Translations under genes and position numbers: made by a program
Assembly: GCA_001600695.1 (NCBI GenBank)
Contig: BCKQ01000019.1
Span: 87,511-151,510 of the forward strand
Reading direction: 5' to 3'
Length of the DNA: 64,000 nt
Origin: Ascoidea asiatica JCM 7603
Taxonomy: Eukaryota > Fungi > Ascomycota
Notes under the pieces: generated by a model
What the model saw: only the letters and a program-made list of their open reading frames with translations
Told to the model about the DNA's origin: nothing
Databases searched by the model: none
Shown: piece by piece, positions 1 through 20,056 of the stretch
Position numbering within the stretch: position 1 is the first letter of the stretch
Layout of the letters: every line of letters begins with the position of its first letter

Positions 1-694
1 TCATTTGAATTACTGGCATACAAATTTGTAATAATGATGGTGTTCTCCATGCCCAATTACTTTGAATTTTTAATGTACCATATGTTGCCCATCCAGAAAT
101 TGTTGAACCAATATTATAACCAGTATTATAAAGTGTACTAACAACAATACGATGTTGAACATGACAAAGTTCTGCAATTATCATTGGTGCTGAACCACAA
201 CAAATTGCATTACCAAAACCCATAATAAATCTTGCTGCAACAAACATTCTAAAATTTTTTGAAAATGTTTGTAATAAAATACCTAAAATTAAAAATGTTG
301 TTCCAACTGCAATACCTGCTTTTCTACCTAAATAATCTGCTATATATGGTGTAACAGTTAAACCACAAATTGCACCAACTGACATTATACAATTAAATAA
401 ACCTAATAATGAACCACCTGGATGATCAAAATAATTTTGCCAATATGATAAAGATTGTAAACCATTCATCATAGAACCATCAAAACCATTAGTTGTTGAA
501 GTTAAAAAACAAATGAATATAAAAAAATATAATTTTCTTAAACCTTTATCTTTATACCAACAAACTTTTGGAAATCTTTGACCTGCAATTTCAAAAGTTA
601 TTTTTTTAACTTCGGGATCAACAGAGTCTACATCATTGTAATTATCATTATCAACAATTGAATCATGTTTCTCATCATTTATAGAATCTGCCAT
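1..694 (-). CDS. MFS sugar porter (lactose permease/cellodextrin transporter LAC12/CDT-like), N-terminal 231 codons; runs off the left edge
   Basis: Not in ORF track. Manual translation from ATG at 694: MADSINDEKH...WYKDKGLRKLYFFIFICFLTSTTNGFDGSMMNGLQSL...ADYLGRK...RFIMGFG...APMIIAELCHVQHR...NWAWRTPSLLQ. The NGFDGSMMNGLQ, D-x-x-GRK and WAWR-x-PSLLQ motifs are typical of the LAC12/CDT clade. Confidence 0.9.
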   Translation of the reverse strand, partial: MADSINDEKHDSIVDNDNYNDVDSVDPEVKKITFEIAGQRFPKVCWYKDKGLRKLYFFIFICFLTSTTNGFDGSMMNGLQSLSYWQNYFDHPGGSLLGLFNCIMSVGAICGLTVTPYIADYLGRKAGIAVGTTFLILGILLQTFSKNFRMFVAARFIMGFGNAICCGSAPMIIAELCHVQHRIVVSTLYNTGYNIGSTISGWATYGTLKIQSNWAWRTPSLLQICMPVIQM

Positions 695-1203
695 TTTTGA
701 ATTAATTGAGTTTTTAAATTAATATTATCAATATTTAACTATTTTTTATACTGTTTGTATAGTTTGAGCTTAAATAAATTGAATAATTGAAATAGAGGAA
801 ATAAAAAAGATAGAGTAGAAATTAGATGACATTTCAGTCTTATTTATACATTTTGAAATATTTAAGGAAATCAAAATTCAAATAAAAAGTAAAGATTTAC
901 AATTATTCTAAACTTGGGATCATAAAGAAAATAAAAACATATTTTTTGTATATGTTTGAATTATATGATAAATTCCTTGTAGATCTTCTGTTAATAGTCG
1001 ACTTAATTAATCTTTAGAATTATTAACGTTAACAAAAAGGAATGAATATAAACCATTTGGATAATGAATGGCCAATGATAATTGAAGCACAGAGAGTTTA
1101 ACTGAATAAAACTGTAGGTAACAGTAAAGCCTTAAACCTTCTTGTCAAAAGTAAAAAACAAATTTGAAGTTTGAAAAACATATATCTTTTCGTTTTCATT
1201 TTA

Positions 1204-1246
1204 CCCCGGAATTACCCTTACATTAAAAGCGCTTTATGTTCTGGGG
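1204..1246. promoter_or_regulatory. Candidate Mig1/CreA glucose-repression GC boxes upstream of the sugar porter
   Basis: CCCCGG (1204-1209) and CTGGGG (1241-1246) match SYGGRG with AT-rich flanks, about 500 bp upstream of a sugar transporter. Confidence 0.4.
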
Positions 1247-3185
1247 TAATTTTTTATTTGAATTTTTCAGTATACTGAATAATTTAGATTAGACAAATTT
1301 TAGATACAAGATGTTCTAATTATTTTCAAGAACTCTTCAATTATGAAAACTGATAGAATGTTTAAAACCGATACTCCACGAAAATGACTCCAAGTGGGGT
1401 TTCAATAATACTTATTATAGCCATATTGATCCAAGTTGATACAATGATTAATGAGTTTTGAATATGTGGGTTCATTTTAAGTTGTGATTTGTTTTTGCAA
1501 CCATTTCAAGTAGTCAATTTCAAATTTTAGCGTATAAATGACTATGACTTGAGTTGAGTAAAAGAGATCGAATAACAGCTATAAACTTTGTTTAGATTGT
1601 TATAGTTTATCGTACAATTATAACATTGGTAAAAACCTCTAAAAATCAGGATTATGGAAATAGCAATTTTTTTCTTAACGAATTGATTGATCAAATATAT
1701 AAATTGAAATTATGAATGAAAAGTGATCAAATTCTAGAAAAAAAAAATGATACATAACTTTCTTTTATTTTTGGAGAAGAGAATCCATTTATGAAGAAGT
1801 GTTAAAAGAAAATTAAGTATGCAGAGTTCTACTTATTATTGTGCACTAAGATCTTAAATTAGTGCTACCTTTAAAAAGAAAAAATGCAAAATACGGAAAA
1901 ATCAATATCAAGAACAACATCAATATCAGTTAGTATAAATACCAATAATAATAGCAATAGCAGTATCCAGATCCATTAAATTCAAGCATTTTTTTCTTGG
2001 AATTAGATAGCACTAATTATGACTTTATCAAAATAGTGTACTGGTAATTATTTAGTAAAAAATTCTAGTATTGAGGGAAAAACCCCAACTATCTTAGGGT
2101 TTCCTATGGCTAAATTTGAACGAATTTTGAGATTTCTATATGTATTAAATGATTTAATTTCATATTTTCTGCCTGTCTTCTTCTTTTACATTAAAGGAAT
2201 CACAAAAAATTGTCGGTGTAAAATAATATCAGGATAAAATAACAATACAACTTAATACACCACAGAATACTGAAGGAAATTGAAGGAGAATAAAGGAGAA
2301 TGACCCTTTTATTTCCCATTTACCGTACTAATCAAAGGGTTTGACTGTTAGGGTTTGGGAAACAGATATTATTCGACCTGAAAACTTTATTTATGTAAAC
2401 CTAAATTTTACATTTGTGAAGTATTGTGTAAAAGCATTTATCTGCATTTCGTAAAATTTTACTGCACTCAAATGCCGATATTTGTCCTAAATCTCAGTTG
2501 ACCCAATCTCTTTTAAGTTGCGGTACAGTTTATAAACATACCCCGAAACTTCCCGGAATTAAATTTTATGCTGGATTCCATTTTTGAAACGCAGTGGCTG
2601 ATATGATGTATGTAACTGTCAGTTGCTGTGTAGCACATACGATCAAAGAAAAAGAGGTGGCGGTGGCGGTGGCAATGCGGAAAATGTCATCTGATTTCTA
2701 GAACCGTGCACGGACTTCCAAATCCACGTGATATCCGGCTGCCATTATCTCAAGAGGACTGTTTACGTTTTGCCGTTTCTGGATGCTGCTGCACAAAACC
2801 ATTCGTTTCGACGATTGGAAGAAGATTTGAAAATTGTACTGTACTGTAAGAAGATAAAGAAGATGTTAAGAAACAGGAACTCAAACTGGAATAGAACAGA
2901 ATAGGAAAAGGAAGTGCTTTTTATGGAAGTTCCGATTGTGCTTATTCTTTTATTTAACCTTCTTTTCAATTGATTATAAGTATTTCTTTCTTTCTCTCAT
3001 TTGGTTTCTGCCTCTTTCTTCTTTCTTTATTGGAAATATACTCTTTATACTGTATATCTGAAATTATAATAAAATATAATACTAAAAAATACAATTTAAT
3101 TCAATAAGATATAATAAAATAAAACATATATAAAAAAAAAAATATATTAAAAAATACTTTTTAAGGAATTCAAAATATATTGAAA

Positions 3186-4838
3186 ATGAAGCTAATCAAT
3201 TCTTTCATAATTCTATTCTATTCGGTTTCAATAATCAATGCTTCTTATATTCCAAATATTAAATTTACTTCAAATGAAGTAACTGATTACTTACATTATT
3301 TAAATGAATTAAAAAATCAATTGAATCCATTTAGATCTAGTTCAATTGATTCTTATGGTGAAAATAATAATATTAATGATGATGATAATAACCAGGCTTT
3401 ATATCTAGATAAATTAGAAGATTTACCTTTAATTGATACAGAAATTTTTCAATCTTTAGTTAATGAAAAAGATTTAAGATTAGGTGCAAATATTTTATAT
3501 AATATATCTTTATCTTCTATCGATGAATATAATCATCCAACAAGAGTTATCGGTTCAAAAGGTCATTATAAAACAATTGGTTTTATTTTAAATACTTTAA
3601 ATAAATTTTCAAATTATTATAGTATTAAAACTCAAGATTTTTTTTCAACTCAAGGTAAAGTTAAGTCATATTCTTTATTAATTGATGGTATAAAACCAAA
3701 ATCTTTAAAAGTTTTCCAATTATCTCCTCCAACAAAAAATAATGATTTAGTCAGTGGTAATTTAATTAAAGTTTCAAATTTTGGTTGTAAACTATCTGAT
3801 TTTCCAGAAAATTCAAAAAATAATATTTTATTAATCGAAAGAGGTCAATGTACTTTTGGTGAAAAATCAGAATTAGCTGGTCAAAATGGTGCTTTAGCTA
3901 CTATTATCTATAATAATGAACCTGGTGATGATTCTGTAAGTGGTACATTAGGTGAACCAACTCCAAATCATGTTCCAACTTTAGGTATATCAAATAATGA
4001 TGCTCTAGTTTTCATTGAAAAATTAGATAATAATGAAATTTTAGAAACCTCAGTTTTTGTTGATTCTTATATTTCAAAAATTAAAACAACTAATGTTATT
4101 GCAACTTCAAGAATTGGCGATCAAGATAATATTGTTATGTTAGGTGGTCATACAGATTCTGTTGAAGCTGGCCCTGGTATTAATGATGATGGTTCTGGAA
4201 CTATATCTTTATTAAATTTAGCTGTTTATTTAACTAAATTTAGTGTAAATAATGCTGTTAGATTTGCATTTTGGGCTGCTGAAGAAGAAGGTTTAGTTGG
4301 TTCAACTTATTATGTTGATCAATTATCTCAAATTGAAAATAAAAAAATTAGATTATTTATGGATTATGATATGATGGGCTCACCAAATTATGCCTATCAA
4401 GTTTATAATGCAAATAATATTGATAATCCTGCAGGCTCTGAGGAATTGAAAAATTTATATATTGATTGGTATATATCAAATGGTTTAAATTATACTTTAA
4501 TTCCATTTGATGGTAGATCTGATTACGATGCTTTTATTAAAAATTTGATCCCTGGTGGAGGTATTGCAACTGGTGCAGAAGGTATTAAAACTGATGAAGA
4601 AGTGAAATTATTTGGTGGTAAAGCAGGGGATTGGTATGATCCTTGTTATCATCAATTATGTGATGATTTATCTAATCCGAATTATGATGCTTGGGTAATT
4701 AATACAAAATTAATTGCTCATTCAATTGCTATATATGCAAATTCTTTAAAAGATTTCCCAATTAGAGAAGATTTACTCACTGCAGAATCTAGAAAGATTC
4801 CTGAATTTAAATACCATGGTTCTCATTTAATAATATAA
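3186..4838 (+). CDS. APE3: Aminopeptidase Y (M28 metallopeptidase with PA domain), secretory/vacuolar
   Basis: First ATG at 3186 (track start 3180 is TTG). Signal peptide MKLINSFIILFYSVSIINA, PA domain (LIERGQCTFGEKS), M28 motifs GGHTDSV, GINDDGSG, AAEEEGLVGS, DYDMMGSPN, GRSDY, CYHQLCD. Confidence 0.9.
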   Translation: MKLINSFIILFYSVSIINASYIPNIKFTSNEVTDYLHYLNELKNQLNPFRSSSIDSYGENNNINDDDNNQALYLDKLEDLPLIDTEIFQSLVNEKDLRLGANILYNISLSSIDEYNHPTRVIGSKGHYKTIGFILNTLNKFSNYYSIKTQDFFSTQGKVKSYSLLIDGIKPKSLKVFQLSPPTKNNDLVSGNLIKVSNFGCKLSDFPENSKNNILLIERGQCTFGEKSELAGQNGALATIIYNNEPGDDSVSGTLGEPTPNHVPTLGISNNDALVFIEKLDNNEILETSVFVDSYISKIKTTNVIATSRIGDQDNIVMLGGHTDSVEAGPGINDDGSGTISLLNLAVYLTKFSVNNAVRFAFWAAEEEGLVGSTYYVDQLSQIENKKIRLFMDYDMMGSPNYAYQVYNANNIDNPAGSEELKNLYIDWYISNGLNYTLIPFDGRSDYDAFIKNLIPGGGIATGAEGIKTDEEVKLFGGKAGDWYDPCYHQLCDDLSNPNYDAWVINTKLIAHSIAIYANSLKDFPIREDLLTAESRKIPEFKYHGSHLII

Positions 4839-5185
4839 TTCAAAACTAAATCAAAATCATTTCTATAGATTACAATTAATAAAAAAAATCCCATAATATA
4901 ACTCCTGCTTTTCTTTTATTAAAAGTCTGCCTGTCTCTGCCTTCGGCCGCCGATATTATGGACTAACTTTTTTTCTTACTTTTGAACCGCCAACCTTAAC
5001 CGGAAAAACTTTTCCTTGGAAAACACCTTTGAAAAAAAGAATATTTTTTACAGTTATTCACTCAAGTAAATAAGACAAAATAGATTGAATATTAATATAT
5101 ATGAAATAATATTGAATAAACTGAAGCTATAACGTAGAAATAGATATAAATGAGGTAAAAAAAGAAAAAGAAAGATATAGAGAAA

Positions 5186-6731
5186 TCACAAAGCATATCT
5201 AAATTTTGGATTTTGCAAATCAGTTAAATCTGCAAATTCTTGATTCTCGAATTTTTCATCATTAGATGGACTTTCTTCATCCCTTTTATTTCTTCTTTTA
5301 TTTTCCAACCAATATGAAATATAAATAGCAACTAGACATACCAAAGCAATTGAATAACAAACAACAATTGAAATTTTTGCAGATGTATAATGAGGAGATT
5401 CACTACTTCTAAAAGTTTGAGGTCCAACAACATTTCCTACACAATATCCGATTAAATAAATTGCATTAACTGTAATTTTTTTTTTTTTGTATGACCAGCA
5501 GTATTTGATGCAAAACAACTTAAACAACATATCATACATGTTGGAGTAATGATGATAAATAATACCCAGCTAATCTTGTTTTTTTAGATTCGGTTGCAAA
5601 AGCTAACATACAACTTGCTATTACAGCCATAGAACCTGAAAAACAAGCAATTGATAATCTATGTTTAATATATTTATTTGCATAACCCATTAACCAGCAA
5701 CCAACGATTTCAACGGCACCTGAAGGTAATCCCATCAAAAGTGAATCTAAAGTATTATAGCCAAAATCTTCTGATAATAAAATTGCACTAAAATTTGTCA
5801 TTCCTCCATTTGGTATATCTGTTGAAATTGCAATTATGAAAAAAATCCAAGTTCTATAATCTGATAAAGCTTCTTTAAATTGATCGAGTTTAAAATGTTT
5901 ATTACCAAAGCCTTGATTATTACTTCTAATTCTTTCAATAATCATTAGTTTCTCATTTTCATTTAAAAACCAGGCTTCAGCAGGAGTATTTGGTATATGA
6001 ATACCAAAAATTATGCCAACAACAATTGTCATTAAGCCTGTGATAATAAATAAAATTTTCCAAGATTCAATTCCGTCATAACTATGACTTGCTAAACCAT
6101 AGGCAATTGATGAACCCATAAGTATACCAAACCCATTAAAACAAAACCAAATTGAAGTTCTAATAAATTGTTCTTCTTGTTTATACCATTGAGAAGTAAA
6201 TAAAACCATTGCAGGAGTTATTGCACTTTCCAACATACCTAAAACTGTTCTTAAAAATATGAAACCAGTATAATTTGGAGTTGCGTGAAGACAAAGAATA
6301 ATACCCCAAAATATTATAAAAAAAGAAGTACATTTAGCTAAAGGAAATTTTTGTAATAATCTACTTGCAGGAAATTCAAAAAATAAGTAACCTAAATAAA
6401 AAGAAGATCCAACCCAAGAATATTTATCACCGGTCATATTCAAATCAGTTTTTAAACCCATAATTGAAGCATAAGAATTTGTAACTTTATCCATAAATTG
6501 AACAGAATATAATAAACAAAAAATAGGCATAATATATAAATCAATTTTTCTTAAAAGTTTATCATTAGTTTCTTTATCAATAACTAATTTTTCTTTTCCC
6601 TTTATATAATTTAAAGCTAAATCTGCATCATTTAAATCAATATTAATTTCTTCACCTTTTGGAGAAATTACTGTCACAAGTTCGGTTACTTTTTTCTCTT
6701 TTTCAAGAGAAGAACTACTACTCAAAGCCAT
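5186..6731 (-). pseudogene. DAL5-family (allantoate/dipeptide, ACS-MFS) permease broken by two frameshifts near TM10-11
   Basis: ORF 5532-6731 has LLRKIDLYIMP, QFMDK, WYKQEEQFIR, ERIRSNNQGFGNKHFK. The conserved segment ITPTCMICCLSCFASNTAGHTKK is in a different frame (about 5480-5550). ITVNAIYLIGYCVGNVVGPQTF...FADLTDLQNPKFRYAL resumes in another frame after an A13 run (T13 at 5476-5488). Assembly error cannot be excluded. Confidence 0.8.
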
Positions 6732-7288
6732 TTTTATATAAAATTTTATTTAAAGCAATTAATTGAAAAGAAAATTGAAAAAAAAAGAAAATTCTTGAAT
6801 TTAAAAAAAAAAGAAAACTGATGCTCATTTTATACACTAAAATAATCAATAGGTTTCAGCTGCTTCAAAAAATTTTAAAAAAAATTGGTTCCCTTTCTCA
6901 TAGAAAAAATTCAAATATTGACCCAAAAATTTATTGAATAGATAAGTACAGAAAAAGGAATTCATTCATGAATTAAGATATTATTGGTAGCTTTTACTAC
7001 TATAATTTCTTCTCTTATTCTTTTTTCAAAATTTTGGGAGCTTTGAATTAATTTTATTTCTCGAAAAATACAAATCCTCTTGATAATAATTGAACTATAT
7101 TTTCAAATTTGAATACCATTTTGAGTGTCTTTTTTTTAATAAATTCCAAAAAAACAAGAAAATTTGAAAAATAGCTAAAAAAAAAACGTCTTATAAGTAA
7201 TCAAAGACAGGTTAAAAACATTTTCTCCAATTAAATGGAATAGTTTAAATTTAAATTCCCCTGTATTTATTACAAACACTTGTAAGGT

Positions 7289-7334
7289 GATAATTGCTGA
7301 TAAGGAAAAAACTTCTGATAAGAATTCTGATAAA
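7289..7334. promoter_or_regulatory. GATA-factor (Gln3/Gat1-type, nitrogen catabolite repression) site cluster upstream of the DAL5-like gene
   Basis: GATAAT 7289, GATAAG 7299, GATAAG 7317 and GATAAA 7329 within 46 bp; another GATAAG at 6941. Confidence 0.6.
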
Positions 7335-7852
7335 TAAAAAAGTGCAGGGCCCAGACCATTTTTCCGGAGAATGCTTCTAGACGCAAAACACGGTAGGAAT
7401 AACGTAATATGCATGACAATGCAGATATAGAAATGAAATTCAACCTTTAATTCCGGGAATGCACTTAGGTGCATTTGTTCTCGGAAAAATTAATTGCACG
7501 TGTTAGGGTTCTTAGTTGAAAGTACGCTATTGACGAGCTATTCCAGTTAGTGAACTCTTTTCATTCCTTAATTACAAATGGAAAAGGAGAATTAGCTGAT
7601 TTAACTGATAAAAGTGTCATATACTGCTCTAATATTATATATGATTAAATAAGTAATATTTAGTGTTTTTAACCAAAGCATCCCAAAAATGTGTGATGGT
7701 GATAGAAATATTACTATAAATGGATTAGCTCCCATAGTTTTAAAGGAGACACACCTGAAGGAGCCTCAAAATTTCAACAGATTATAGAAGAAGCAGATCC
7801 TTATAAATTGTGACTTGTTTTATACAGCTTATTATACTGTATGCTTTAGGAA

Positions 7853-8363
7853 TCATAAATGGCTGTTGTTTTTATTGTTATTATTGATATTATTATTATT
7901 GGTGCTATTAATATTTGATTTATTAATTGATTAAATTGAATTTTGATTATTTTGATTATTTTGACTATTGAAAAGTCGTGTTTGTAAATTTTTTTTAACA
8001 TTAGCTATATCTTTTCTATATAAACTATGATTCATAGAAGCTAAAAATAATTTGGTTTCTAATAATCCAATTAGATTTACGAATGTTTGTCGACTATCTA
8101 TTGGAACTTTACTATAACCTAATATTAAAAAAGTTACTACTTTTCATCTTTCTTGTGTTGGAAAATTTTTTTGCCATTCATATTTATAATTTACAGTATT
8201 ACTATTAGTGGAATTAGTATTGTTATTAATACTATTGATAATATTAGCCATTTGTTGATTGATATATGATTGGTAAGTGTTATTGTTATTATTATTGTTG
8301 TTACTAAGTGGAATATTTGGATTGAGGTTATTTGAATTTATATTTCGATTTACCTCTAGACAT
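7853..8363 (-). pseudogene. Interrupted Asn-rich gene with a Gal11/Med15 KIX-like domain
   Basis: ATG at 8363 in strong context (CAAAATGTCT), 1-nt frameshift after MSRG, then one frame reads NRNINSNNLNPNIPLSNNN...YEWQKNFPTQER*KVVTFLILGYSKVPIDSRQTFVNLIGLLETKLFLASMNHSLYRKDIANVKKNLQTRLFNSQNNQNNQNSI*SINKSN...HL*. Stops at 8146-8144 (TGA), 7933-7931 (TAA) and 7855-7853. The KIX assignment is by recalled pattern only. Confidence 0.55.
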
Positions 8364-8824
8364 TTTGATTAATAGTATATGCTAAGATAAGATAGGATAT
8401 AATAAATAGACAAGAAAGTAAAGAATATAATATAAACTGTACTATACTAAGATAGAATAGAAAAAAATACAATAAAATAGACAAAATAAACAAGTTAAAC
8501 CAAATTGAGAATATATATTGTAACCACTTTAATATTATATTGAATGAATGAAATGTATTTGGAATATGAGATATATTATGTAAGGGATGTACTGTATTTA
8601 TATATAGCGAAAAGAGCTATTGATTAATAGGAAATATAAAAATCAATGATATGAATGATATTACTTCAGTTATCTATTATCAATTATCAATTAGAAAATA
8701 AAAAATATATAATTATATAGAGTAGTGACTCTGTCAGAGTACCAGTATCTACCATTTTTTTTGCACCTTATTCATGGTATGATTTGGTTATATAATTTGG
8801 TTAGTTATTCGATTTCATATTTAT

Positions 8825-10189
8825 TCATTTTAATAAGGATAATTCTTTTTCATTTATTGCTTTGGTTACAGCACTTACAATTATATCTATTTCTTCTTTT
8901 GAGACAGTGAATGGAGGAGCAATTAAAATATGATCACCATTTATACCATCGATTGTACCAGAACCAGGATAAACATAAACTCCATTTTTTAGAATATTTT
9001 TTTGAATTTGAGAACCAATATGAATTGAAGGATCAAAAGGTTTTTTAGTTTTTTTATCTTTAACAAATTCAATACCCCAAAATAAACCACGACCTCTAAT
9101 ATTTCCAACAATTTTATTTGATGATAAATTTTTTATTAAACTTTCAGATAAATAAATACCCATTTTTTTAACATTATCTAATAAATTATTTTCTTCAATA
9201 TATTCTGAAACTGCTAAACCTGCAGCACATGAATATGGAAAGGTTTGAAAAGTATGACCATTATTAAAAGAATTAGAACCTTTTTTTAAAACATCTAAAA
9301 TTTTTGGAGTTATAAAAACTGCAGATAATGGAGAGAATCCACTAGAAATTGCTTTACCAGAAGTTGTAATATCAGGAATTATATCTTCTTGTTCCCAAGC
9401 AAAAAAAGTTCCAGATCTTCCACTACCACACATAATTTCATCTAAAATTAATAGAATATCATATTTTTCACAAATTTGTTTAATTTTTTTAAAATAATTT
9501 TTTGGAGCTATTGTACAACCAGTTGCAGCACCAACTATAGTTTCTGCAAAAAATCCAGCAATATTTTCAGAACCAATTTCATTAATTTTATCTTCAAAAT
9601 TTTGAATTAATCTATTAACATAATCATCAGTTGATTCATTTTTAAGTTTATATCTATATTCATTTGCAGAATCAACTTTGTGAAAATTATTTTTATTTAA
9701 AATTTTTTCAAATGGTTTTCTTCTTAATTTATGATCAGATAAAGATAAACATGATAAAGTATTACCATGATAAGAATGATTTCTTGAAATAAATTGATTT
9801 TTATTAAATTTACCTTGTTCATAAAAATATTGAATTGATAATTTTATTGCAGCTTCATTTGCTTCACTACCAGAACTAATAAAATAAACTTTTGATAAAT
9901 TTTTTTTATAATTTTTTAATAATTTATTACTTAAAGTTTCTGCAGCAGAAGTTGTAAAAAAAGATGAATGAATATATGTAACATTTGAAAGTTGAGATGA
10001 TAATTTTTTAATAACTTCAGGATTTGAATGACCAACAGATATTACAGCTGCACCACTACATGCATCTAAAATTTTTTCACCATTTTGAAGATAAATAAAT
10101 GAACCTTTTGCATTTTCAACTACTAATGGACAATCAGATAATGATCTATGTAATAAAGAAGAATCTAAAAGTTCTTGATCTGTTATCAT
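8825..10189 (-). CDS. Class-III PLP-dependent aminotransferase (YodT/BioA-like fungal subfamily), substrate unknown
   Basis: ILDACSGAAVISVGH, SGSEANEAAIKL, SYHGNT, FFAETIVGAATG, LILDEIMCGSGRSG, PDITTSGK (PLP lysine), HTF, IRGRGLFWGIEFV, GDHILIAPP. Confidence 0.92.
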   Translation of the reverse strand: MITDQELLDSSLLHRSLSDCPLVVENAKGSFIYLQNGEKILDACSGAAVISVGHSNPEVIKKLSSQLSNVTYIHSSFFTTSAAETLSNKLLKNYKKNLSKVYFISSGSEANEAAIKLSIQYFYEQGKFNKNQFISRNHSYHGNTLSCLSLSDHKLRRKPFEKILNKNNFHKVDSANEYRYKLKNESTDDYVNRLIQNFEDKINEIGSENIAGFFAETIVGAATGCTIAPKNYFKKIKQICEKYDILLILDEIMCGSGRSGTFFAWEQEDIIPDITTSGKAISSGFSPLSAVFITPKILDVLKKGSNSFNNGHTFQTFPYSCAAGLAVSEYIEENNLLDNVKKMGIYLSESLIKNLSSNKIVGNIRGRGLFWGIEFVKDKKTKKPFDPSIHIGSQIQKNILKNGVYVYPGSGTIDGINGDHILIAPPFTVSKEEIDIIVSAVTKAINEKELSLLK

Positions 10190-10385
10190 TATAATGAAAT
10201 TGACTTTATTATGATTATTATTATTATCCTTAACTAACTAACTAACTACCTTACAAATTAGCAAAGTATGATCATTGTTTGATTTATAAGGAGATTTCGA
10301 GTACTTTAAATAAATAGAAGAACCATTTTTATATACAGTATATTAAGTAAGATGAGTTTGGATCTATTAGAATATCTGCTCTCTC

Positions 10386-10587
10386 GATAAGCTCAATCGA
10401 AGTCTCGAAATAATAGTAACACTCTTAGATAAGAGAACAAGCTTCATTTTGCTGTCAACTGCTCGGTTAGATGAAACGCAGGTCACGACGGGCAACTGCA
10501 TGCCAATTGCCGAAAGGAGAAGATTAACCGATGATATTGACCTGGGGTTTATCCGAGAATGTCTCGTTTAGCTTATCCTGGCGGCTA
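10386..10587. promoter_or_regulatory. GATA sites and URS1 (Ume6)-like core in the aminotransferase/small-ORF divergent promoter
   Basis: GATAAG at 10386 and 10428, CTTATC at 10572, GGCGGCTA at 10580-10587. Confidence 0.5.
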
Positions 10588-11203
10588 AAAGTGGCCATTT
10601 GAATTAGGAAATATAAAGTAAATGAATTCCGGTTATATCCACTGAGGTGGTAGTACCAGCAACATGGGTAATGCAAGTTGAATTACTTCAATGCAGTAAT
10701 GTCTGCGGAGTGGAACCGTAATATTTTTTATCCATGCATGGATTAATCCGGAACATAATCCAGTTCTGGAATGCACATCCATGTTTATTTTTTCCAGGCT
10801 TACGTAATTCTGAGTTGTCACGCGTTCCAAATGTAGACAAGCAATGAAATTGGGATGGCAAGCAACAAAAAACATAAAAACAATTTTGGCTCATGAAGAC
10901 AGAAGAAATAAATCAAAAAAGAAATAACAAGAAACAACAAGCAATGACAAGAAAAGAAAGGGGATTATTGAAGTGAATTGAAGCGAATTGAATTGAATTG
11001 AAATGAAATGACTTGAAAGAAAAAGAATTGAAAATGTGCATTGAAAACAGTTTGTATAATAAATATGAAAGAGAAAGACAATTGAATTGTTTTTAATTTG
11101 ATAATGTAATAGAAATCCATATTTTAAATCTAATACAAACTAGAATATAATTCAATAATATAACCAACCATTCAACAATATACTCACACTCAATAATAAA
11201 ACA

Positions 11204-11488
11204 ATGTTTGAATTGATTAAAAAAATATATTCCATTTCAAAAACTGGAAAAAATTTAATTTCAATGACTCCACAATCTCTATTATTGAAATATAGTTATA
11301 AAAATATTGGAAATTTAACAAAATTTTCAACTGGTTTATTTGGAACTATTACTACTTTTTATTATACTTTTAATAAATTTATTTTAAATAAAAATAATAA
11401 AAAATCAAATAATAATAATTCTACAAATAATCAATCTGAACAATTAAAAGATAAAAGAAAAGATAAAAGTAAATTTAAATCTTCTTAA
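11204..11488 (+). CDS. Orphan 94-aa basic protein with one moderately hydrophobic segment
   Basis: A-rich start context (ATAAAACAATG), codon usage like real genes here, segment FSTGLFGTITTFYYTF, Asn/Lys tail. No family recognised. Confidence 0.5.
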   Translation: MFELIKKIYSISKTGKNLISMTPQSLLLKYSYKNIGNLTKFSTGLFGTITTFYYTFNKFILNKNNKKSNNNNSTNNQSEQLKDKRKDKSKFKSS

Positions 11489-11748
11489 TTTTAGAAACAC
11501 TGCATAAATCACTGTTATTACTGTTTATAAAATAGCTTTAAAGTTATCTTTACCCGAAGACTGGCGTTTTTTATCTGCTTTCAAACCTATTTTTTCAAAT
11601 ATTATTTATTATTATTATATTATATTTTTTAATATATTCTTAAATAGTAAATAAATAAATAGGAAAATAAATTAACTCCTATTTAAATGAGCTTTATTCC
11701 TGGATTTTTTTAGTAGAATTACAAATTTTAATATTAATATAATAAAAA

Positions 11749-14700
11749 ATGTCATCAAAAATTTCAAATAAAAGAAAAAAAGTTTGAAAAGCTTGTAATT
11801 ATTGTAGATTAAAAAAAATTAAAGGTAATGGTAAAAATTCTTGTTACAATTGTAAAGAAATTAATAAAGATTGTATATATTCAATAAATAAAAAAAAAAA
11901 TCAATTTTTTCAAATTTAAAAAATGAAATTAATAATATTAAACAAATTATTAAAATTTTAATTAATATTCCAATTTTAAATAATTCTAAAGATATTAATA
12001 ATAATATTAATAAAAATAATGACTGGAGACTGAAAATTTTAATGATTTTAAATAATAAATTTGATATAAATTCAGGTTTAAATTCAAATTTAAATTCTCA
12101 ATCAATTGATTTATTGAATGATAATATTCTCTCTGATATTGAAAGTGATACAAATGATGATTATGATATTGATATTGATAATGAAATTGAAAATGAAATT
12201 GAAATTGATAATGAAATTAATACAGAAAATGAAACTAATATTGAAAATAATAGTTATCAAGAAAAGGATAATAATAGTGGTAATAATAATAAAAAAATCA
12301 ACCACAATCACAATACTTTTGGTGCAAATAATTTGAAAGAGCATTTCAATAATAATAAATTGATTATCAAAGATATTAACAATAAAGATAATAAAAACAT
12401 ACCTTATTCAATCGAAATTAATAAAATATCACAAAATTTAGACTACAGTTGTGAAGAAAATTGTAATAAATCTATTACATTACAATTAAAATTTTTAAAA
12501 AATAAAAATAATGCTTTTTTTGGTGCTCATCAAGCTTCTTCTTCATTATTTACATATTCTGATATAACTTGGTTAAATAATAAATGTGAAGAATTAAATT
12601 TACAAAGTTATATTAATTAATTAGAAATCTTTTTATTTAATTTCAGAACTATCAATTTAAATTTACCAGATTCAAATAAATTCACTTATTTTAATAAAAT
12701 TACAAAATAATAACTTTGAATTTCAAAATTTAAATTTCGAAAAGATCATTGAAATTCATTTATCAAATGCAATCTATTGTTTTCAAAAAATTCAGATTAT
12801 TTTCTTATCAGTAAGAAACTCAAATATTAGTTTAATTTTCAAATCAATTTAGGGTATAATTTTACTTTTAGATTATCTTGAAAATTCAGTCAATTCAACA
12901 TTCTCAAAAGTTTTATTACAAACTTTATTCAGATTATTGATTGATTTAGGTTTAAATTAAAAAAAATCATATCTTAATTTACCAATTGAAGAAAAAATTA
13001 AAAGAAAAAAATTTTTTTTAATATTTTATTTTTTTGAAAATTTTATCAAAATTTAAAAAACAGAATTAATTTCAAATTTTGATATAACTTCAATTGATGA
13101 AAATGATAATCAAGAATTTATTTTGGATTCTCTTCAAACTAATAATTTAAATAAACTAAACTCAAATTCTTTTTAGAAAATTAAATATTTTCATAATTTA
13201 AAAGATAAATTAAGTTTTTTAATTGAATTGAAAGAAATTTCAAGAATAAATGATGGATTTTTTAATCTTTATTTAAATTATATCAATTCAAAACTTTCAA
13301 AAATTGGATCAAATATATATATTCAATTACTTTCACCAAAATCGATGTTAAAATTCAATTCAGAGAAAAAAATTCAAGCAGAGTTGATTTTATTTGAATT
13401 GAATGAACTAAAACAAAATACAATTATTTCAGGATCTGAAATTTTTTGAAATTTTTATTAGATTATTCAAAAGAACCATTAAGAGATTTTGGTGATGATA
13501 ATTCAGAATATTTAATTTTTGAAAAACATTATAAATATTTTATGCTATTAATTAATTATTATTATTCTATTGCAGTTGTTAATAGATTTGCATGTATTAT
13601 TCTATGGAATGAAAAATCGAATTTTAAAAATAAAGATAAAAATAAGAAAATAATTAAAAATGATGAGAAATATATCATAGATTGCTTAGATTCATGTTGT
13701 TCAATTCTTAAATTATCAAAACATGGAATAAAAAATAAATTATTAATTGGATTTCCATTTATTTTCAAAAGTTTAAGTTTTTTTATAAATTTTTCATTGG
13801 TTTCAATATTTTCATGTTGTATACAGTTTAAAAATTTATCAAAAAGAGATAATTATTTAATTGTTTCAATGGATTACGTTTCATCATTTTCAGAAAGATT
13901 CAAAAATGAAGAATCTAATACAGTTATTGTAATTTTACCAATTTCAGGACATCAAGCAATAATGAGAATTATGATGAGAATTTTATTAAAAATTTATGAA
14001 CCTATTTATATTAAAAATAATAATTTATATGTTAAAAATTTGATTGAAGAATATTTCAAAAAAAATTTTATTTATGAAGAAATTGATAAAATGAAATTGA
14101 GGGAAAAAGCAAAATTGAATTTAGATTCAAAAAAAAGACATGAAGAAGAAGAAAAAATAATAAGAAAAAAGGAAATCGGAGAGAAAATTAAAATTAAAGA
14201 ATCAATTATTAAACTTTTTCTAAATAAAAATGATATTGTAAATAAGAATATTAATGACATAAGCAAGATAGTCGATACAAATATTAACAGAACAACAATT
14301 AACAATAGTATCGTTCATAATGTCAACAGTATCAATAGAAATATAAATAATAATAATATAAGTGCAAATAATATTAACAATAATATTGTGAGTGAAATTT
14401 ATCCAAAAGAGATTAACAGTTTGAATAACTATAACAATATCAGTACTTTAAACAATCTGGTAAATCCGAATAATTCCAATAGTATCAATTTACTTAGTAA
14501 TACTAATCATGTTAACAATCTCAATAATCTCAATAGTTTCAACAATTTTAATAATTTTGGTAGTTTTGGAAATAGTCTGAATAACTCAGGAAATAACTTT
14601 TGTAATTTCAATAATTCAAATGCTGAAATAGCTGGTATCAATGCAAATGGTAATACAAACAATTCGGCTAATTTAAATATTAATAGTGAAAATATTTTCC

Positions 14701-14786
14701 AGGATTATTTTTCTGATTTTGATTTTAATTCTGGAATGTTTGATTTAAATTCACTTAATTTCTTTGAAGACTTTTTAAATCCATGA
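11749..14786 (+). pseudogene. Zn(II)2Cys6 transcription factor pseudogene (Hal9/Tac1/Pdr-like architecture)
   Basis: ATG at 11749 gives MSSKISNKRKKV*KACNYCRLKKIKGNGKNSCYNCKEINKDCIY: TGA at 11785-11787 and the third Cys replaced by Gly. Frameshift near the A/T runs at about 11890-11910, then ORF 12042-12620 (FFGAHQASSSLFTYSDITWL), further stops and frameshifts at 12620-13450 (remnant LPIEEKIKRKKFF), and ORF 13446-14786 ending in an acidic-aromatic activation-like tail (IFQDYFSDFDFNSGMFDLNSLNFFEDFLNP). Confidence 0.85.
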
Positions 14787-15480
14787 ATGTTTGATTTTGA
14801 AACTAGACCGTTGTATATAAATATTCAGATTAGTTTTACTCAGAATGATTTTTTGATAAAATTGCAGTAATTATTAAAGAAATTGTATTACATATTTTAG
14901 ACGTATATTTTTTCGGCTATAGCTCCGGGTGAGTAACGGAACAACTCTGGACCTGCTAATTAAGGTTTCTAGCTTGCAGTTTGAAGTTTTCGGAGCCAAA
15001 GCTTATTTTGGGTTTTGTGTTTTTGTTTTTCCGGGAGCAGAAATTCCTGGAAAACAAAAACTCGAGCCGTAAAATTATCCCAGAGAAACAACAGAAATAT
15101 ATCTTCTTTTTTCTTGGCTCAGTTAAATCAACTTCTTCTTTTTTTTCTTCTCTTTAAAATAATAAAAGTCAACTCCAAATCAAAAAAAAGTGGAATATTT
15201 TTAGTGCCCGGAATGAATTTGAAAAATTTTAAAAAAAAAGACCACAAAGATTATGTAAGCACATTTTAGCACGTGCTTTGTTAAGATTTACCTCGGATAT
15301 AAAATTTCCCTTTTAATAGCAGGGCTGTAAAATTTTTGTTTTGGTTTTGATTTTAGAATTGAAATTGGTTTGAAAGAAGAAGAAGTTGAGCTTTTGGACA
15401 AGCATGAACTCTAGGGCTTGAAGAGATCAGAGATTATTTATAACTTATTAAGTATAATAGAATATTATTTACTTTTGAAA

Positions 15481-18400
15481 ATGATTTTTGACCAAGACTT
15501 ATTGGATATTGTTGCAAGATCCACTTCTGATTCTTCTTCCAACAACAATAATAAGAGACCTAGAAGTGATTCCGAGAATGATAATAATAGTAATCCATAT
15601 ATCAATTCTCAAATAATTGAAATTGAAGGAGGAAATCAAGAAACTGATCTAAACCTAAATCAAAATCAAAATCAAAATCAAAACCAAAACCAAGATCAAG
15701 AATTAAATTTAGATTTAGATTTAGACGCAAATACAAAAGTCTCCAATGATATTCAATATCACAATATTGAAAATGAAAATGAAAATGGAAATGAAAATGA
15801 GAATGAAATTGAAATTTCAAATCAAAATCAAAATCAAAGCCAGGATGGTGAGAATGAATCTAGAAAAGATGAATCTTCAAAAAAAAGACAAAAGATATCT
15901 CAAGATTCAGAATATTTTAACTCGAATATTGATAATGAATTAATTGAAGCTGATTTAAATAATGTTGAAGCTCTTAATCAAGCTTTAACTAATAATATTT
16001 CTGATCAAATAAATAAGGAAGTTCAATCTGATACTATTAATATTGTTCCTCTTACTAAATCTGATAATGATAATGATAATGATGATAATAATGGTAATGA
16101 TAATGATGATAATAATAATAATATTGAAATAACAAATAGTCAAAAACATTTGGACATAAAAAATTTATTACAATCAAAATTTGGAACTTCAATAATAGAT
16201 TTATTAAATTCAAATTCAGTTTCCAAAAATGGGTTTTCATCTAATTCTTTTTTAAAATTACCAAAAATTTCTGATTCTAAAACTCAATTAGGTGGTTTAC
16301 CTTTACCATTAATTGCCCCTTCAATTTTACCACCGAATTTACAATTTAATATTCAATCAATTCCAATTTTAGATAATATCTCAACTCAATTTTTAAGAAT
16401 TATAATTTCAACTAACTTTTTTAAACTTTTAGATTTAATTTTTAGTAAAGATTCATCTCCTGAAGGTTCCACTTTTACTAATATTTGTGGGATATTATAT
16501 TATGTTAAATCATTTTATTCTTCCGATAATCCTTTTTTAACAATTCATGATGTTTTACCAGGATTTTGGAAACCTGGTAATGTAGCTCCAACAATTTTAA
16601 GAGGGAAAGAAGATATAATTGAAACTGCTTTAAGAAAATCAAATTTAGCTACTTTTGTTTTTTGTACTTTAGGTATGATGGAAGATGTTACTTTAAGTGA
16701 ATTAGATGAAAATTTCTTAGATGTATTTTGTCCTCCTTCAAATTCTTTAACTTTAGATACAAAATTACTTACAAAAAGAGTAAATGAAACTGATCAAGAT
16801 ATAATGGCAACTGCAAATACAACTGGTGTTGGAGGTTCTGGAAAATTATTAAAATCTCAAGCTGTTTTATTCTTAGAATTAAAAACCCAAGTTTATATTG
16901 CTGCTTTATCTGAAACTGAAAAACCAAAAGAAGATATTGCAGAAGAAACTTTTCCAGAAAATTTTGGTGAAACTTTAATGAAAAGAAGAGGTGTATCCAA
17001 AAAAAATAGACAAAATTATAATCAATATTTAACTCCTGCAGAAAAAGATTTTTGTAATAGATGTCGTTCAAGAAAAGAAAATCTATTAAAAGAAAATGAA
17101 ACTGAAAAATTAATTGAAAAATATGGATATTTTTTATTTATAAAGGAATTAATTGAATACATTAAAAAAAATTTAGGTTTTATTATTTATGGAAGACGTG
17201 GTAGAAGTTTCAATTTAGAAGTAGAGCATGCTTGGAACGATATTACTTCAGAATCGAATTCTCCATTGGAAATTGAAAATGATATATCAGAAGTAAACAA
17301 ATCTCTCTCTAATTCAGTTGAATTACAAACTGAAAAAATTCCTTTTGATGGAAATAATCTTGAAACTAATTTAAATACAGATAAAAATTATATTAACGAA
17401 AATTCTAATAATGGATCAAAACATTCTCCCAACTTGGTTGAATCTAATGATAACGAGTCATCAAACGTAATTGAAACCACGAATGAAAATAATAATATTG
17501 AAAATGATAATCAAATTCAAAATCAAGAGGAAATTGTAGATGGGAATGGAAATGTAAATGAATTACAACTTCAAATTTCCACTGAAAATATTAGTAATGA
17601 TAATAATAGTAATATTAATATGGATAGTGGCTTAAAAACAGTATCTCAAGATAATTATGATCCTAATTTAAGTAGGATTGAAAATCAAGAAGTTCAAACA
17701 ATTGAAGGTAATGATCGTCAAAATCAAGAAAATGAAAACAATACCGATATTAATAACAATGACAATGATAATAATAATATCAATAATGATGGCATTGATA
17801 ATAACACTCATAGTAATGAAAATCCAGAAGAAAATTCTCTTGATAAGAGTGAGGAAGCTACTATACTTGAGAAAATCAGTCAAATAAATATGGAAGCTTC
17901 AATGATTGCAGATTCTAATGAAACTCAAAATCTTGGACAAGAACAAAATTTACAATACTCAAATTCATTGGATCAAAATTCAACTAATGAAGATTTAACT
18001 CAAGATCACATTTTTGCTCTAACTCAAACTCAATTGATGAATTCAAATATTAATTCTAATTCAGATAATCAAGTACAAGTATCAAATGTAAATAAAAGAA
18101 AAAATCAAAATAAGCATTCAGCCTCGAAGAAATCTAAAGTTAAAACAATTGTTCGTCGTCCATGGTCCAAAGAAGAAGAAAGTGCATTAAAAGATGGATT
18201 AATGTCCACTGGACCTAAATGGTCAAGAATTTTAGAATTACATGGAGCTGGTGGGAAAATGTCAGAATATTTAAAAAATAGAACTCAAATTCAACTCAAA
18301 GATAAAGCAAGAAATTGGAAAATGTATTATTTGAAAAGAAATATGGAAGTTCCAGTTTACTTGGATAAAGTTACTGGAGACATCGATAGGGAAGACAGAG

Positions 18401-18537
18401 CAATAAAGAGTAGAAGAAAAATTATAAATAATGCTAATGTTAAAAGAATAAGAAAAACTGCTGCTCCAGATGATGTTCCAGTAATATGGTCAGAAGGAAA
18501 TGGAACCGAAAGTCCATCAGGAGAACCCAATTCTTAA
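15481..18537 (+). CDS. TBF1: Telobox/Myb-domain general regulatory factor Tbf1
   Basis: First ATG at 15481. TRF-like region (IPILDNISTQFL, LRKSNLATF, LDENFLDVFCP, KLLKSQAVLFLELKTQVYIAAL) and C-terminal telobox RRPWSKEEESAL...GPKWSRILELHGAGG...LKNRTQIQLKDKARNWK. Confidence 0.92.
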   Translation: MIFDQDLLDIVARSTSDSSSNNNNKRPRSDSENDNNSNPYINSQIIEIEGGNQETDLNLNQNQNQNQNQNQDQELNLDLDLDANTKVSNDIQYHNIENENENGNENENEIEISNQNQNQSQDGENESRKDESSKKRQKISQDSEYFNSNIDNELIEADLNNVEALNQALTNNISDQINKEVQSDTINIVPLTKSDNDNDNDDNNGNDNDDNNNNIEITNSQKHLDIKNLLQSKFGTSIIDLLNSNSVSKNGFSSNSFLKLPKISDSKTQLGGLPLPLIAPSILPPNLQFNIQSIPILDNISTQFLRIIISTNFFKLLDLIFSKDSSPEGSTFTNICGILYYVKSFYSSDNPFLTIHDVLPGFWKPGNVAPTILRGKEDIIETALRKSNLATFVFCTLGMMEDVTLSELDENFLDVFCPPSNSLTLDTKLLTKRVNETDQDIMATANTTGVGGSGKLLKSQAVLFLELKTQVYIAALSETEKPKEDIAEETFPENFGETLMKRRGVSKKNRQNYNQYLTPAEKDFCNRCRSRKENLLKENETEKLIEKYGYFLFIKELIEYIKKNLGFIIYGRRGRSFNLEVEHAWNDITSESNSPLEIENDISEVNKSLSNSVELQTEKIPFDGNNLETNLNTDKNYINENSNNGSKHSPNLVESNDNESSNVIETTNENNNIENDNQIQNQEEIVDGNGNVNELQLQISTENISNDNNSNINMDSGLKTVSQDNYDPNLSRIENQEVQTIEGNDRQNQENENNTDINNNDNDNNNINNDGIDNNTHSNENPEENSLDKSEEATILEKISQINMEASMIADSNETQNLGQEQNLQYSNSLDQNSTNEDLTQDHIFALTQTQLMNSNINSNSDNQVQVSNVNKRKNQNKHSASKKSKVKTIVRRPWSKEEESALKDGLMSTGPKWSRILELHGAGGKMSEYLKNRTQIQLKDKARNWKMYYLKRNMEVPVYLDKVTGDIDREDRAIKSRRKIINNANVKRIRKTAAPDDVPVIWSEGNGTESPSGEPNS

Positions 18538-18910
18538 TCGAAAAGTTTATTGTTTTCTCCATTTCTTTTATTCTTATTTTTTTCCTCTATTATTTTTAGT
18601 GTATTTTATAGTCCCAAAATTTTATCAATTTTTTAAAATAAATATTTATTTACTTCAACACTATTCAGCTTACTTGTAGAAATACTTTTTATTCGATTTT
18701 CACTGTTCAGAGTGGATGTTGGAAGATTCCCTCTTTCGGAGCCTCGAAGTTAGTGCAAGTCGAAAACAAATGCGATGGCAACAAAACGAAGCTGGAAGCA
18801 TTTGTAATAAATAAACCAACAAATAAATCAATAAAAGAATCAAGACAAAAATTAAGAAGCATCTTGGATGAACTATAGAAATAAAGTATAAAGGCAAAGT
18901 TAATTTGAAA

Positions 18911-20056
18911 ATGTTCAGGTATTCCAATCGTATTGGCCCTGGTAGAGCAGCTGCTCAAAGTTTTTTTAGATTCTACTCTTCCAAGAATGAGAGTCCAACT
19001 GCTATTGTTTTCTTAAATATGGGTGGTCCAGCTAAAATTGAAGATACAAGAAAATATCTTCATCGAATCTTTTCTGATTCTGATATGATTCCATTTGGCT
19101 TTTTTCAATCCCAATTGGCTTCATTCATTACTGCTAGAAGAACTGCAATGGTCGAAAATAATTACAGAGAAATCGGAGGTGGCTCTCCAATATTGAAATG
19201 GTCAAAATTACAAGCAGAAAAAATGTGTGAAATTTTGGATAAAACAAATCCAGAAACTGGTCCCCATAAACCTTATATTTGTTTTAGATATACAGATCCA
19301 TTACCTCAAGAAGTTATTCCTCAAATGCTAGAAGATGGAATTAAGAAAGCTGTTGCATTTTCTCAATATCCTCAATTTAGTTTCTCAACTTCTGGTTCAA
19401 GTATAAATGAATTATATAGAAATTGGATAGAAATTGACAAAGAAAAACAGATTGATTGGTCAGTGATTGATAGATGGCCTTTACATCCTGGACTTTTGAA
19501 AACTTTTGCTTCTCATATTGATACTAAAATTGAAGAATTTAAAAAAGAAGGTACTGATCCAAAGAAAATAATGGTTTTATTTTCAGCTCATTCATTGCCT
19601 TTATCTGTTATCAATAAAGGTGATTCTTATATAAGTGAAGTGGCTGCTACTACTCATGGAGTTATGAAAGAATTGAACTCTAAAGTTCCTTATAGATTAT
19701 CCTGGCAATCAAAAGTTGGACCAAAAAGATGGATGGGTCCTTCAACTTTAGATATGGTTAAAAATTTAGAAAATTTATATGATGGTATAATTCTTGTACC
19801 AATTGCTTTTACCTCAGATCATATTGAAACTTTACATGAATTAGATATTGAATTAGTTGGCGAATTAAAAAATCCTAAGAAGCTAAAAAGAGCAGAATCC
19901 TTGAATGTCGACCCTCAATTTATTGAAGCTTTAGCTAATATTGTATCAAATCATTTCAAAAATGGTCGTAAACACTCTAGACAACTTGAACTTGAATATA
20001 AATTATTTAAATCTAAAGGAATATTTTCTGATTTATCTGAGTTTTTTAAACACTAA
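18911..20056 (+). CDS. HEM15: Mitochondrial ferrochelatase
   Basis: ATG at 18911. Arg-rich presequence, NMGGP, YREIGGGSPI, SQYPQFSFSTSGSS, IDRWP, LFSAHSLP, WQSKVGP, PIAFTSDHIETLHELD. Confidence 0.93.
   Translation: MFRYSNRIGPGRAAAQSFFRFYSSKNESPTAIVFLNMGGPAKIEDTRKYLHRIFSDSDMIPFGFFQSQLASFITARRTAMVENNYREIGGGSPILKWSKLQAEKMCEILDKTNPETGPHKPYICFRYTDPLPQEVIPQMLEDGIKKAVAFSQYPQFSFSTSGSSINELYRNWIEIDKEKQIDWSVIDRWPLHPGLLKTFASHIDTKIEEFKKEGTDPKKIMVLFSAHSLPLSVINKGDSYISEVAATTHGVMKELNSKVPYRLSWQSKVGPKRWMGPSTLDMVKNLENLYDGIILVPIAFTSDHIETLHELDIELVGELKNPKKLKRAESLNVDPQFIEALANIVSNHFKNGRKHSRQLELEYKLFKSKGIFSDLSEFFKH

Follow-up and report, generated by a model that had tools for sequence, protein, structure and literature searches.

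Duplicated Mediator tail genes in yeasts

Mediator subunit 15 (Med15/Gal11) is laid out as a KIX domain, one or more activator-binding domains and a C-terminal Med15_fungi region. Genes for subunits of the Mediator tail have been duplicated in other yeasts. The TLO (Med2) family of Candida albicans, founded on a duplicated piece of a tail-subunit gene, comprises many intact, expressed genes, mostly subtelomeric, and Candida glabrata possesses Gal11A and Gal11B, both full-length and functional. The Gal11 KIX domain of Saccharomyces cerevisiae and C. glabrata docks Pdr1 and Oaf1, and the Gal11A KIX of C. glabrata is mentioned in the same source (PMC3936767).

Here we describe a locus of Ascoidea asiatica JCM 7603, in a 64,000-nucleotide stretch of contig C19 (BCKQ01000019.1; C19:87511-151510, hereafter the window), that retains the KIX part of this layout alone. 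It shares with the TLO genes a descent by duplication from part of a Mediator tail-subunit gene and, like Gal11A and Gal11B, consists of duplicated MED15 sequence with a KIX domain. Unlike the former, it is one broken fragment, lies at least 87 kb from a contig end and bears no sign of selection; unlike the latter, it is a defunct 5' piece and not a second full-length gene. From Med15/Gal11 KIX domains proper (KIX_2, PF16987) it differs in being untranslatable, in lacking the Mediator-anchoring region and in going unrecognized by the Pfam model when presented alone. The locus is an ordinary unprocessed pseudogene fragment, a known kind of element, with which it shares a DNA-level copy that includes the promoter, an intact parent, a frameshift and nonsense codons, truncation and neutral divergence. 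Its sole peculiarity is that repeats of Asn/Gln codons mediated an internal deletion that keeps the frame.

The intact MED15 gene

Translation of the minus strand of the window from 8362 to 7853 yields an Asn-rich frame of 170 codons with just two internal stops, TGA at 8146-8144 and TAA at 7933-7931, while the ATG at 8363-8361 (minus) lies one base out of phase with it. An earlier note on this DNA had reported an Asn-rich frame with two internal stops and a 1-nt slip, which the translation bears out, and the core that it quoted (WQKNFPTQER*KVVTFLI...NVKKNLQ) recurs there without change.

A six-frame search of the genome (20.3 Mb in 71 contigs) with the 70 codons following the TGA returned two places, the relic itself and C7:54300-54506, the latter with 67% identity (E=2.4e-19) inside an open frame of 1433 codons. 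Another comparison of the relic with the C7 region gave 62% identity over 66 amino acids. At the DNA level, the relic matched the same C7 place with E ~1e-93, including approximately 350 bp 5' of the common ATG. Judged from these alignments, the frame and its match to C7 are far beyond chance.

The C7 open reading frame encodes 1424 amino acids (L004:471-4745, equivalent to G000:C7:53970-58244). A Pfam search with the whole Asn/Gln-rich protein found no match, and domains emerged only after it was cut into pieces. KIX_2 then aligned to residues 99-166 (E=0.03, model positions 3-75 of 83) at 14.7 bits, below the cut-off of 25.6; Gal11_ABD1 was likewise below its cut-off (E=0.02), and Med15_fungi, at 30.3 bits, exceeded its cut-off of 25.2. 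The three follow one another as KIX_2, Gal11_ABD1 and Med15_fungi, the canonical fungal Med15/Gal11 order. Among PDB sequences, the KIX region matched best to the KIX domain of Arabidopsis MED15a (9zjn_C), aligned end to end with E=0.06, and this entry ranked first again in a small-profile PDB search. The top language-model neighbors shown for this region were KIX families, as was every one of the ten best-ranked neighbors with a family assignment. The genome has no second Med15_fungi locus besides the C7 frame. From the three ordered Pfam matches, the PDB and language-model neighbors and the single Med15_fungi locus, we conclude that the C7 frame, to judge by homology, is the single true MED15/GAL11 of this yeast, in highly divergent form, and that the segment copied into the window is therefore its KIX domain.

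AlphaFold2 modeled the parental KIX region with helices at H20-31, H39-59 and H63-84 and an N-terminal helix, at a mean pLDDT of only 56.5, and Foldseek comparison of this low-confidence model with the PDB gave nothing at E<=0.001, with CBP KIX entries appearing at E 2-5. Word-index protein searches with the KIX and Med15_fungi regions found no relatives, and an exhaustive phmmer search of 1.84 billion representatives with the 85-amino-acid KIX region returned solely a spurious ankyrin-repeat protein; both blanks reflect sensitivity and not absence. Several C7 open reading frames (in L003 and L004) contain X residues, which stand for ambiguous assembly bases, and neither the MED15 frame nor the relic region contains any.

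Pfam searches of the pieces of the relic between stops, each searched separately, found no match even at E<=10, so that the KIX_2 gathering score was not reached; a six-frame genome scan with the KIX_2 model found nothing, and a language-model search with the 70-amino-acid piece of the relic did not recover KIX. The pattern W-x7-ER-x-K-V/A-V ... L-E-x-K-L-F ... Y is kept and aligns with the KIX domain of Arabidopsis MED15a. On the strength of its 62-67% identity to the species' own MED15 KIX region (E=2.4e-19), the relic frame is a derivative of the Med15/Gal11 KIX region, as the earlier note had held. The note had also drawn a loose analogy to the TLO expansion. No expansion of that kind is seen here: the KIX core occurs at two places in the genome, one of them broken, there is one Med15_fungi locus, and the search of this genome with the core, which the note had advised, found the C7 MED15 as the single other place and no intact short KIX-only copy.

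Anatomy of the copied segment

Homology to MED15 runs along the minus strand from window position 8716 (L004 55, approximately 350 bp 5' of the ATG) to about 7866. The first part, 8364-8716, is non-coding and corresponds to the MED15 promoter and 5' leader (L004 55-470), with 81% identity in aligned columns and 10 indel events. It is followed at 8361-8363 by an ATG that the DNA alignment pairs with the start codon of MED15, both standing in a TCAAAATGT context. A run of AAA at 8349-8351, one A more than the AA of the parent, precedes the Asn-rich, low-complexity N-terminal tract (8187-8348), which is 82% identical to its counterpart and, through changes in repeat length, 111 nt shorter. The KIX-domain core (YEWQK...NLQTRLFN), equivalent to MED15 codons ~96-170, occupies 7967-8186 and aligns without indels at 80% nucleotide and 62-67% amino acid identity.

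Beyond the core, an NNQ-coding 12-nt repeat at 7940-7966 marks a junction, identified both by alignment and by the genome DNA search. After the repeat, the relic resumes at L004 1713-1816 (MED15 codons ~414-448), to which it is 87% identical without gaps; genome-wide, this is the best match of window 7866-7969, at 125 bits, with the runner-up among many Asn-repeat matches at 79 bits. Since the relic continues there and not with the next MED15 codons, an in-frame deletion of ~720 nt lies between two in-phase NNQ repeats, removing MED15 codons ~177-413 (~240 codons), the ABD1-like region included. The tail (7866-7939) is homologous to MED15 codons ~424-448 (L004 1740-1816) and its homology stops inside Asn-codon repeats, so that the terminal TGA of the frame in the earlier note (7853-7855, by translation) falls past the end of homology.

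Since promoter DNA is part of the copy, it arose by partial duplication at the DNA level and not through retrocopying. As for an unprocessed pseudogene, an intact parent exists elsewhere and homology reaches into the non-coding flank for approximately 350 bp. A larger segmental duplication was rejected: window positions 1-20000 contain no relic of any of the genes neighboring MED15 on C7. A search around the relic for flanking repeats, target-site duplications and mobile-element ends found none.

A promoter and start codon of its own, together with a deletion after the KIX core that preserves the frame, are features that a once-functional stand-alone KIX-only paralog would have. Such a gene would have served as an adaptor or decoy for a local Zn2Cys6 activator, and would be either recently dead or still expressed by means of frameshifting and stop read-through. 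The lesions, the pattern of divergence and the state of the adjacent genes all bear on this explanation, to which we return below.

Lesions in the reading frame

Three lesions separate the relic from an open frame. The first is the additional A in the run at 8351-8349, where the relic reads GGTAAATC and the parent GGTAATC, shifting the frame by +1 after codon 4. The second is the change of a parental AGA to TGA at 8146-8144, which falls where KIX helix 1 begins and replaces the second of the two Arg residues in ERRK. The third converts a parental CAA to TAA at 7933-7931. These disabling lesions (+1 A, AGA>TGA, CAA>TAA) are real in the DNA. Contigs built from short reads of three runs in two studies, whose DNA may have come from the assembled strain itself, extend over 6483-8628 or 6715-8628 without a single difference or gap. 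They show no variant at 8349-8351, 8144-8146 or 7931-7933; given this identity between the window and the contigs of all three runs, assembly errors do not account for the lesions, which are properties of the sequenced strain. The read check at 8144-8146 and about 8350 that the earlier note had called for thus came out in favor of a genuine TGA and a genuine extra A.

An assembly or sequencing artifact that masks an intact gene might be suspected in a homopolymer-rich genome of 25% GC (the window itself is ~25% GC), with a frameshift that falls inside a run of A. Against this stand the identity of the read contigs of three runs and two studies across the whole element and the nature of the lesions, two of the three being base substitutions, and we regard the chance of such an artifact as negligible.

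Two routes by which the frame might be rescued were examined, and neither holds. A variant genetic code in which TGA is sense does not apply, as TGA terminates 6 of the 22 long open reading frames here, an ordinary stop, and the parental codon is AGA. A 5' intron bypassing the frameshift (GTAAAT...TTAG, 8353-8304) would yield the wrong frame upon splicing, and the intron-less parent reads straight through. Read-through of the KIX stop, on which continued expression of a KIX-only paralog would depend, is disfavored in the same way, with an A following the TGA and TGA serving as a normal terminator in this genome. The three lesions are independent and two of them precede the KIX domain or fall where it begins, which further argues against such a paralog.

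Sequence divergence of the copy

Relic and parent are equally diverged throughout, with identities in aligned columns of 81.2% for the upstream part, 82.4% for the N-terminal tract and 80.0% across the KIX core. Over 102 aligned codons, differences at codon positions 1, 2 and 3 number 17, 23 and 17, and within the 73-codon core 26 codons carry amino-acid-changing differences while 7 are synonymous only. The NG86 dN/dS, with the stop codon left out of the count, is 0.78 for relic versus parent (bootstrap 95% range 0.35-1.9; below 0.3 in 0.6% of replicates), a pairwise value that takes the relic and parent branches together. A ratio of ~0.8 is what a neutral copy compared with a constrained parent would give, and not what two constrained genes would. 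Given this ratio and the equal divergence of promoter and coding sequence, there is no sign of coding constraint on the relic; in this pairwise comparison, as for an unprocessed pseudogene, the relic frame shows no purifying selection.

The distribution of indels is uneven, with 0 in the KIX core (220 nt) versus 10 events in the 457 columns upstream. An indel-free core is what a KIX-only paralog would be expected to leave and is suggestive, at most, of past constraint, since flanks rich in repeats would also lead one to expect this contrast. The ratio near 0.8, the match between coding and non-coding divergence, the failure of Pfam and language-model features to recognize the 70-amino-acid piece as KIX and the lack of a further copy in the genome all speak against the paralog, which the earlier note had favored. 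What the locus contains instead is a truncated duplicate of the MED15 promoter and 5' coding region, with an internal deletion and three lesions.

As regards base composition, the relic has a GC content of 21.3% versus 17.9% for the parent over aligned columns 7940-8730, and columns pairing a parental A/T with a G/C of the relic number 57, versus 31 of the reverse kind, which is the opposite of a simple AT-biased decay of the relic.

The surrounding genes

The relic sits between an intact class-III aminotransferase gene (8825-10189) and an MFS permease. The latter (DAL5/MFS-type; 5186-6731, minus strand; L005:2025-3584) is split into 399 and 117 codons by frame changes near 5480-5540, which the identical read contigs confirm, and an intact paralog of 519 amino acids, 83% identical in DNA, is found at G000:C1:619604-621083. 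In the reads, 6046-6483 is also represented by a further sequence of equal depth that differs at 13/117 and 26/281 positions and resembles a heterozygous allele; this reading was rejected, as the sequence is exactly the C1 permease paralog.

On the plus strand at ~11749-11900, approximately 3.5 kb from the relic, lies a frame of Zn2Cys6 type (MSSKISNKRKKV*KACNYCRLKKIKG...CYNCKEINKDC) with a stop in frame ahead of the cluster and with Gly where the third Cys should be. This frame is probably what is left of a dead zinc-cluster factor. The 446-amino-acid open reading frame downstream of it (13446-14786) has no Pfam match. Of the Zn2Cys6 gene that the earlier note had placed nearby, the Zn2Cys6-type frame stands, ~3.5 kb off, but as a broken frame, with a stop and the third Cys changed to Gly. 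With both this frame and the permease broken, the block looks like redundant copies in decay, and their presence beside the relic makes it less credible that the block works as a catabolic cluster.

A Zn2Cys6-type frame 3.5 kb away would suit a KIX-only paralog that binds zinc-cluster activators; this neighbor, though, is stopped in frame and without its third Cys, and the permease neighbor is frameshifted. The proposal in the earlier note that the relic acted as a cluster-specific adaptor or decoy is accordingly unsupported, there being no sign of coding constraint and the Zn2Cys6 neighbor being itself broken. Taking the evidence on both sides, we consider it very unlikely that the relic was once a functional KIX-only paralog of this kind, whether recently dead or still expressed.

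A non-coding role could also be imagined, in which the duplicated MED15 promoter fires and gives rise to a non-coding transcript or to read-through into the permease, altering local expression. The permease lies downstream on the same strand as the relic, and blocks of the promoter are well kept, such as 32 nt around the TATATATA motif with one mismatch. By our estimate, however, a block of this kind is expected by chance somewhere in ~850 nt at a background identity of 80%, identity upstream (81%) is on a par with that in the dead coding sequence, and the permease is itself a pseudogene. We therefore view such a role as very unlikely.

Origin and significance

We consider window 7866-8716 (minus strand) to be an unprocessed, truncated MED15 pseudogene that has drifted neutrally and from which no KIX protein would be made, and assign this reading a probability of about 0.88. 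Observed directly are the homology with its limits, the presence of the lesions in reads, the existence of one intact parent and an absence of coding constraint. The following course of events would produce such an element. A segment of C7 comprising ~350-400 bp of the MED15 promoter and leader and roughly the first 450 codons would have been copied into the aminotransferase-permease spacer on C19, possibly by ectopic repair or recombination, with its 3' end in Asn-codon repeats, so that the Mediator-anchoring part of MED15 would never have been in the copy. A further ~240 codons, including ABD1, may have been lost through recombination or slippage between the in-phase NNQ repeats. The +1 frameshift at codon 5, the TGA at the start of KIX and the TAA after it would have come later, and neutral drift would have brought the copy to ~80% identity. 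Such a relic would have no present function. That it was born with a working promoter and served for a time as free KIX, a soluble decoy for zinc-cluster factors, or that its promoter still drives a regulatory non-coding transcript over the permease, are ideas to which we attach very little weight.

The pseudogene explains a 1-kb stretch that had appeared intergenic, and the label that it should carry in the annotation is that of a MED15 pseudogene fragment and not of a new regulator. As a by-product, the true MED15 of a very AT-rich yeast is identified on C7, with KIX and ABD1 regions too divergent for the Pfam thresholds.
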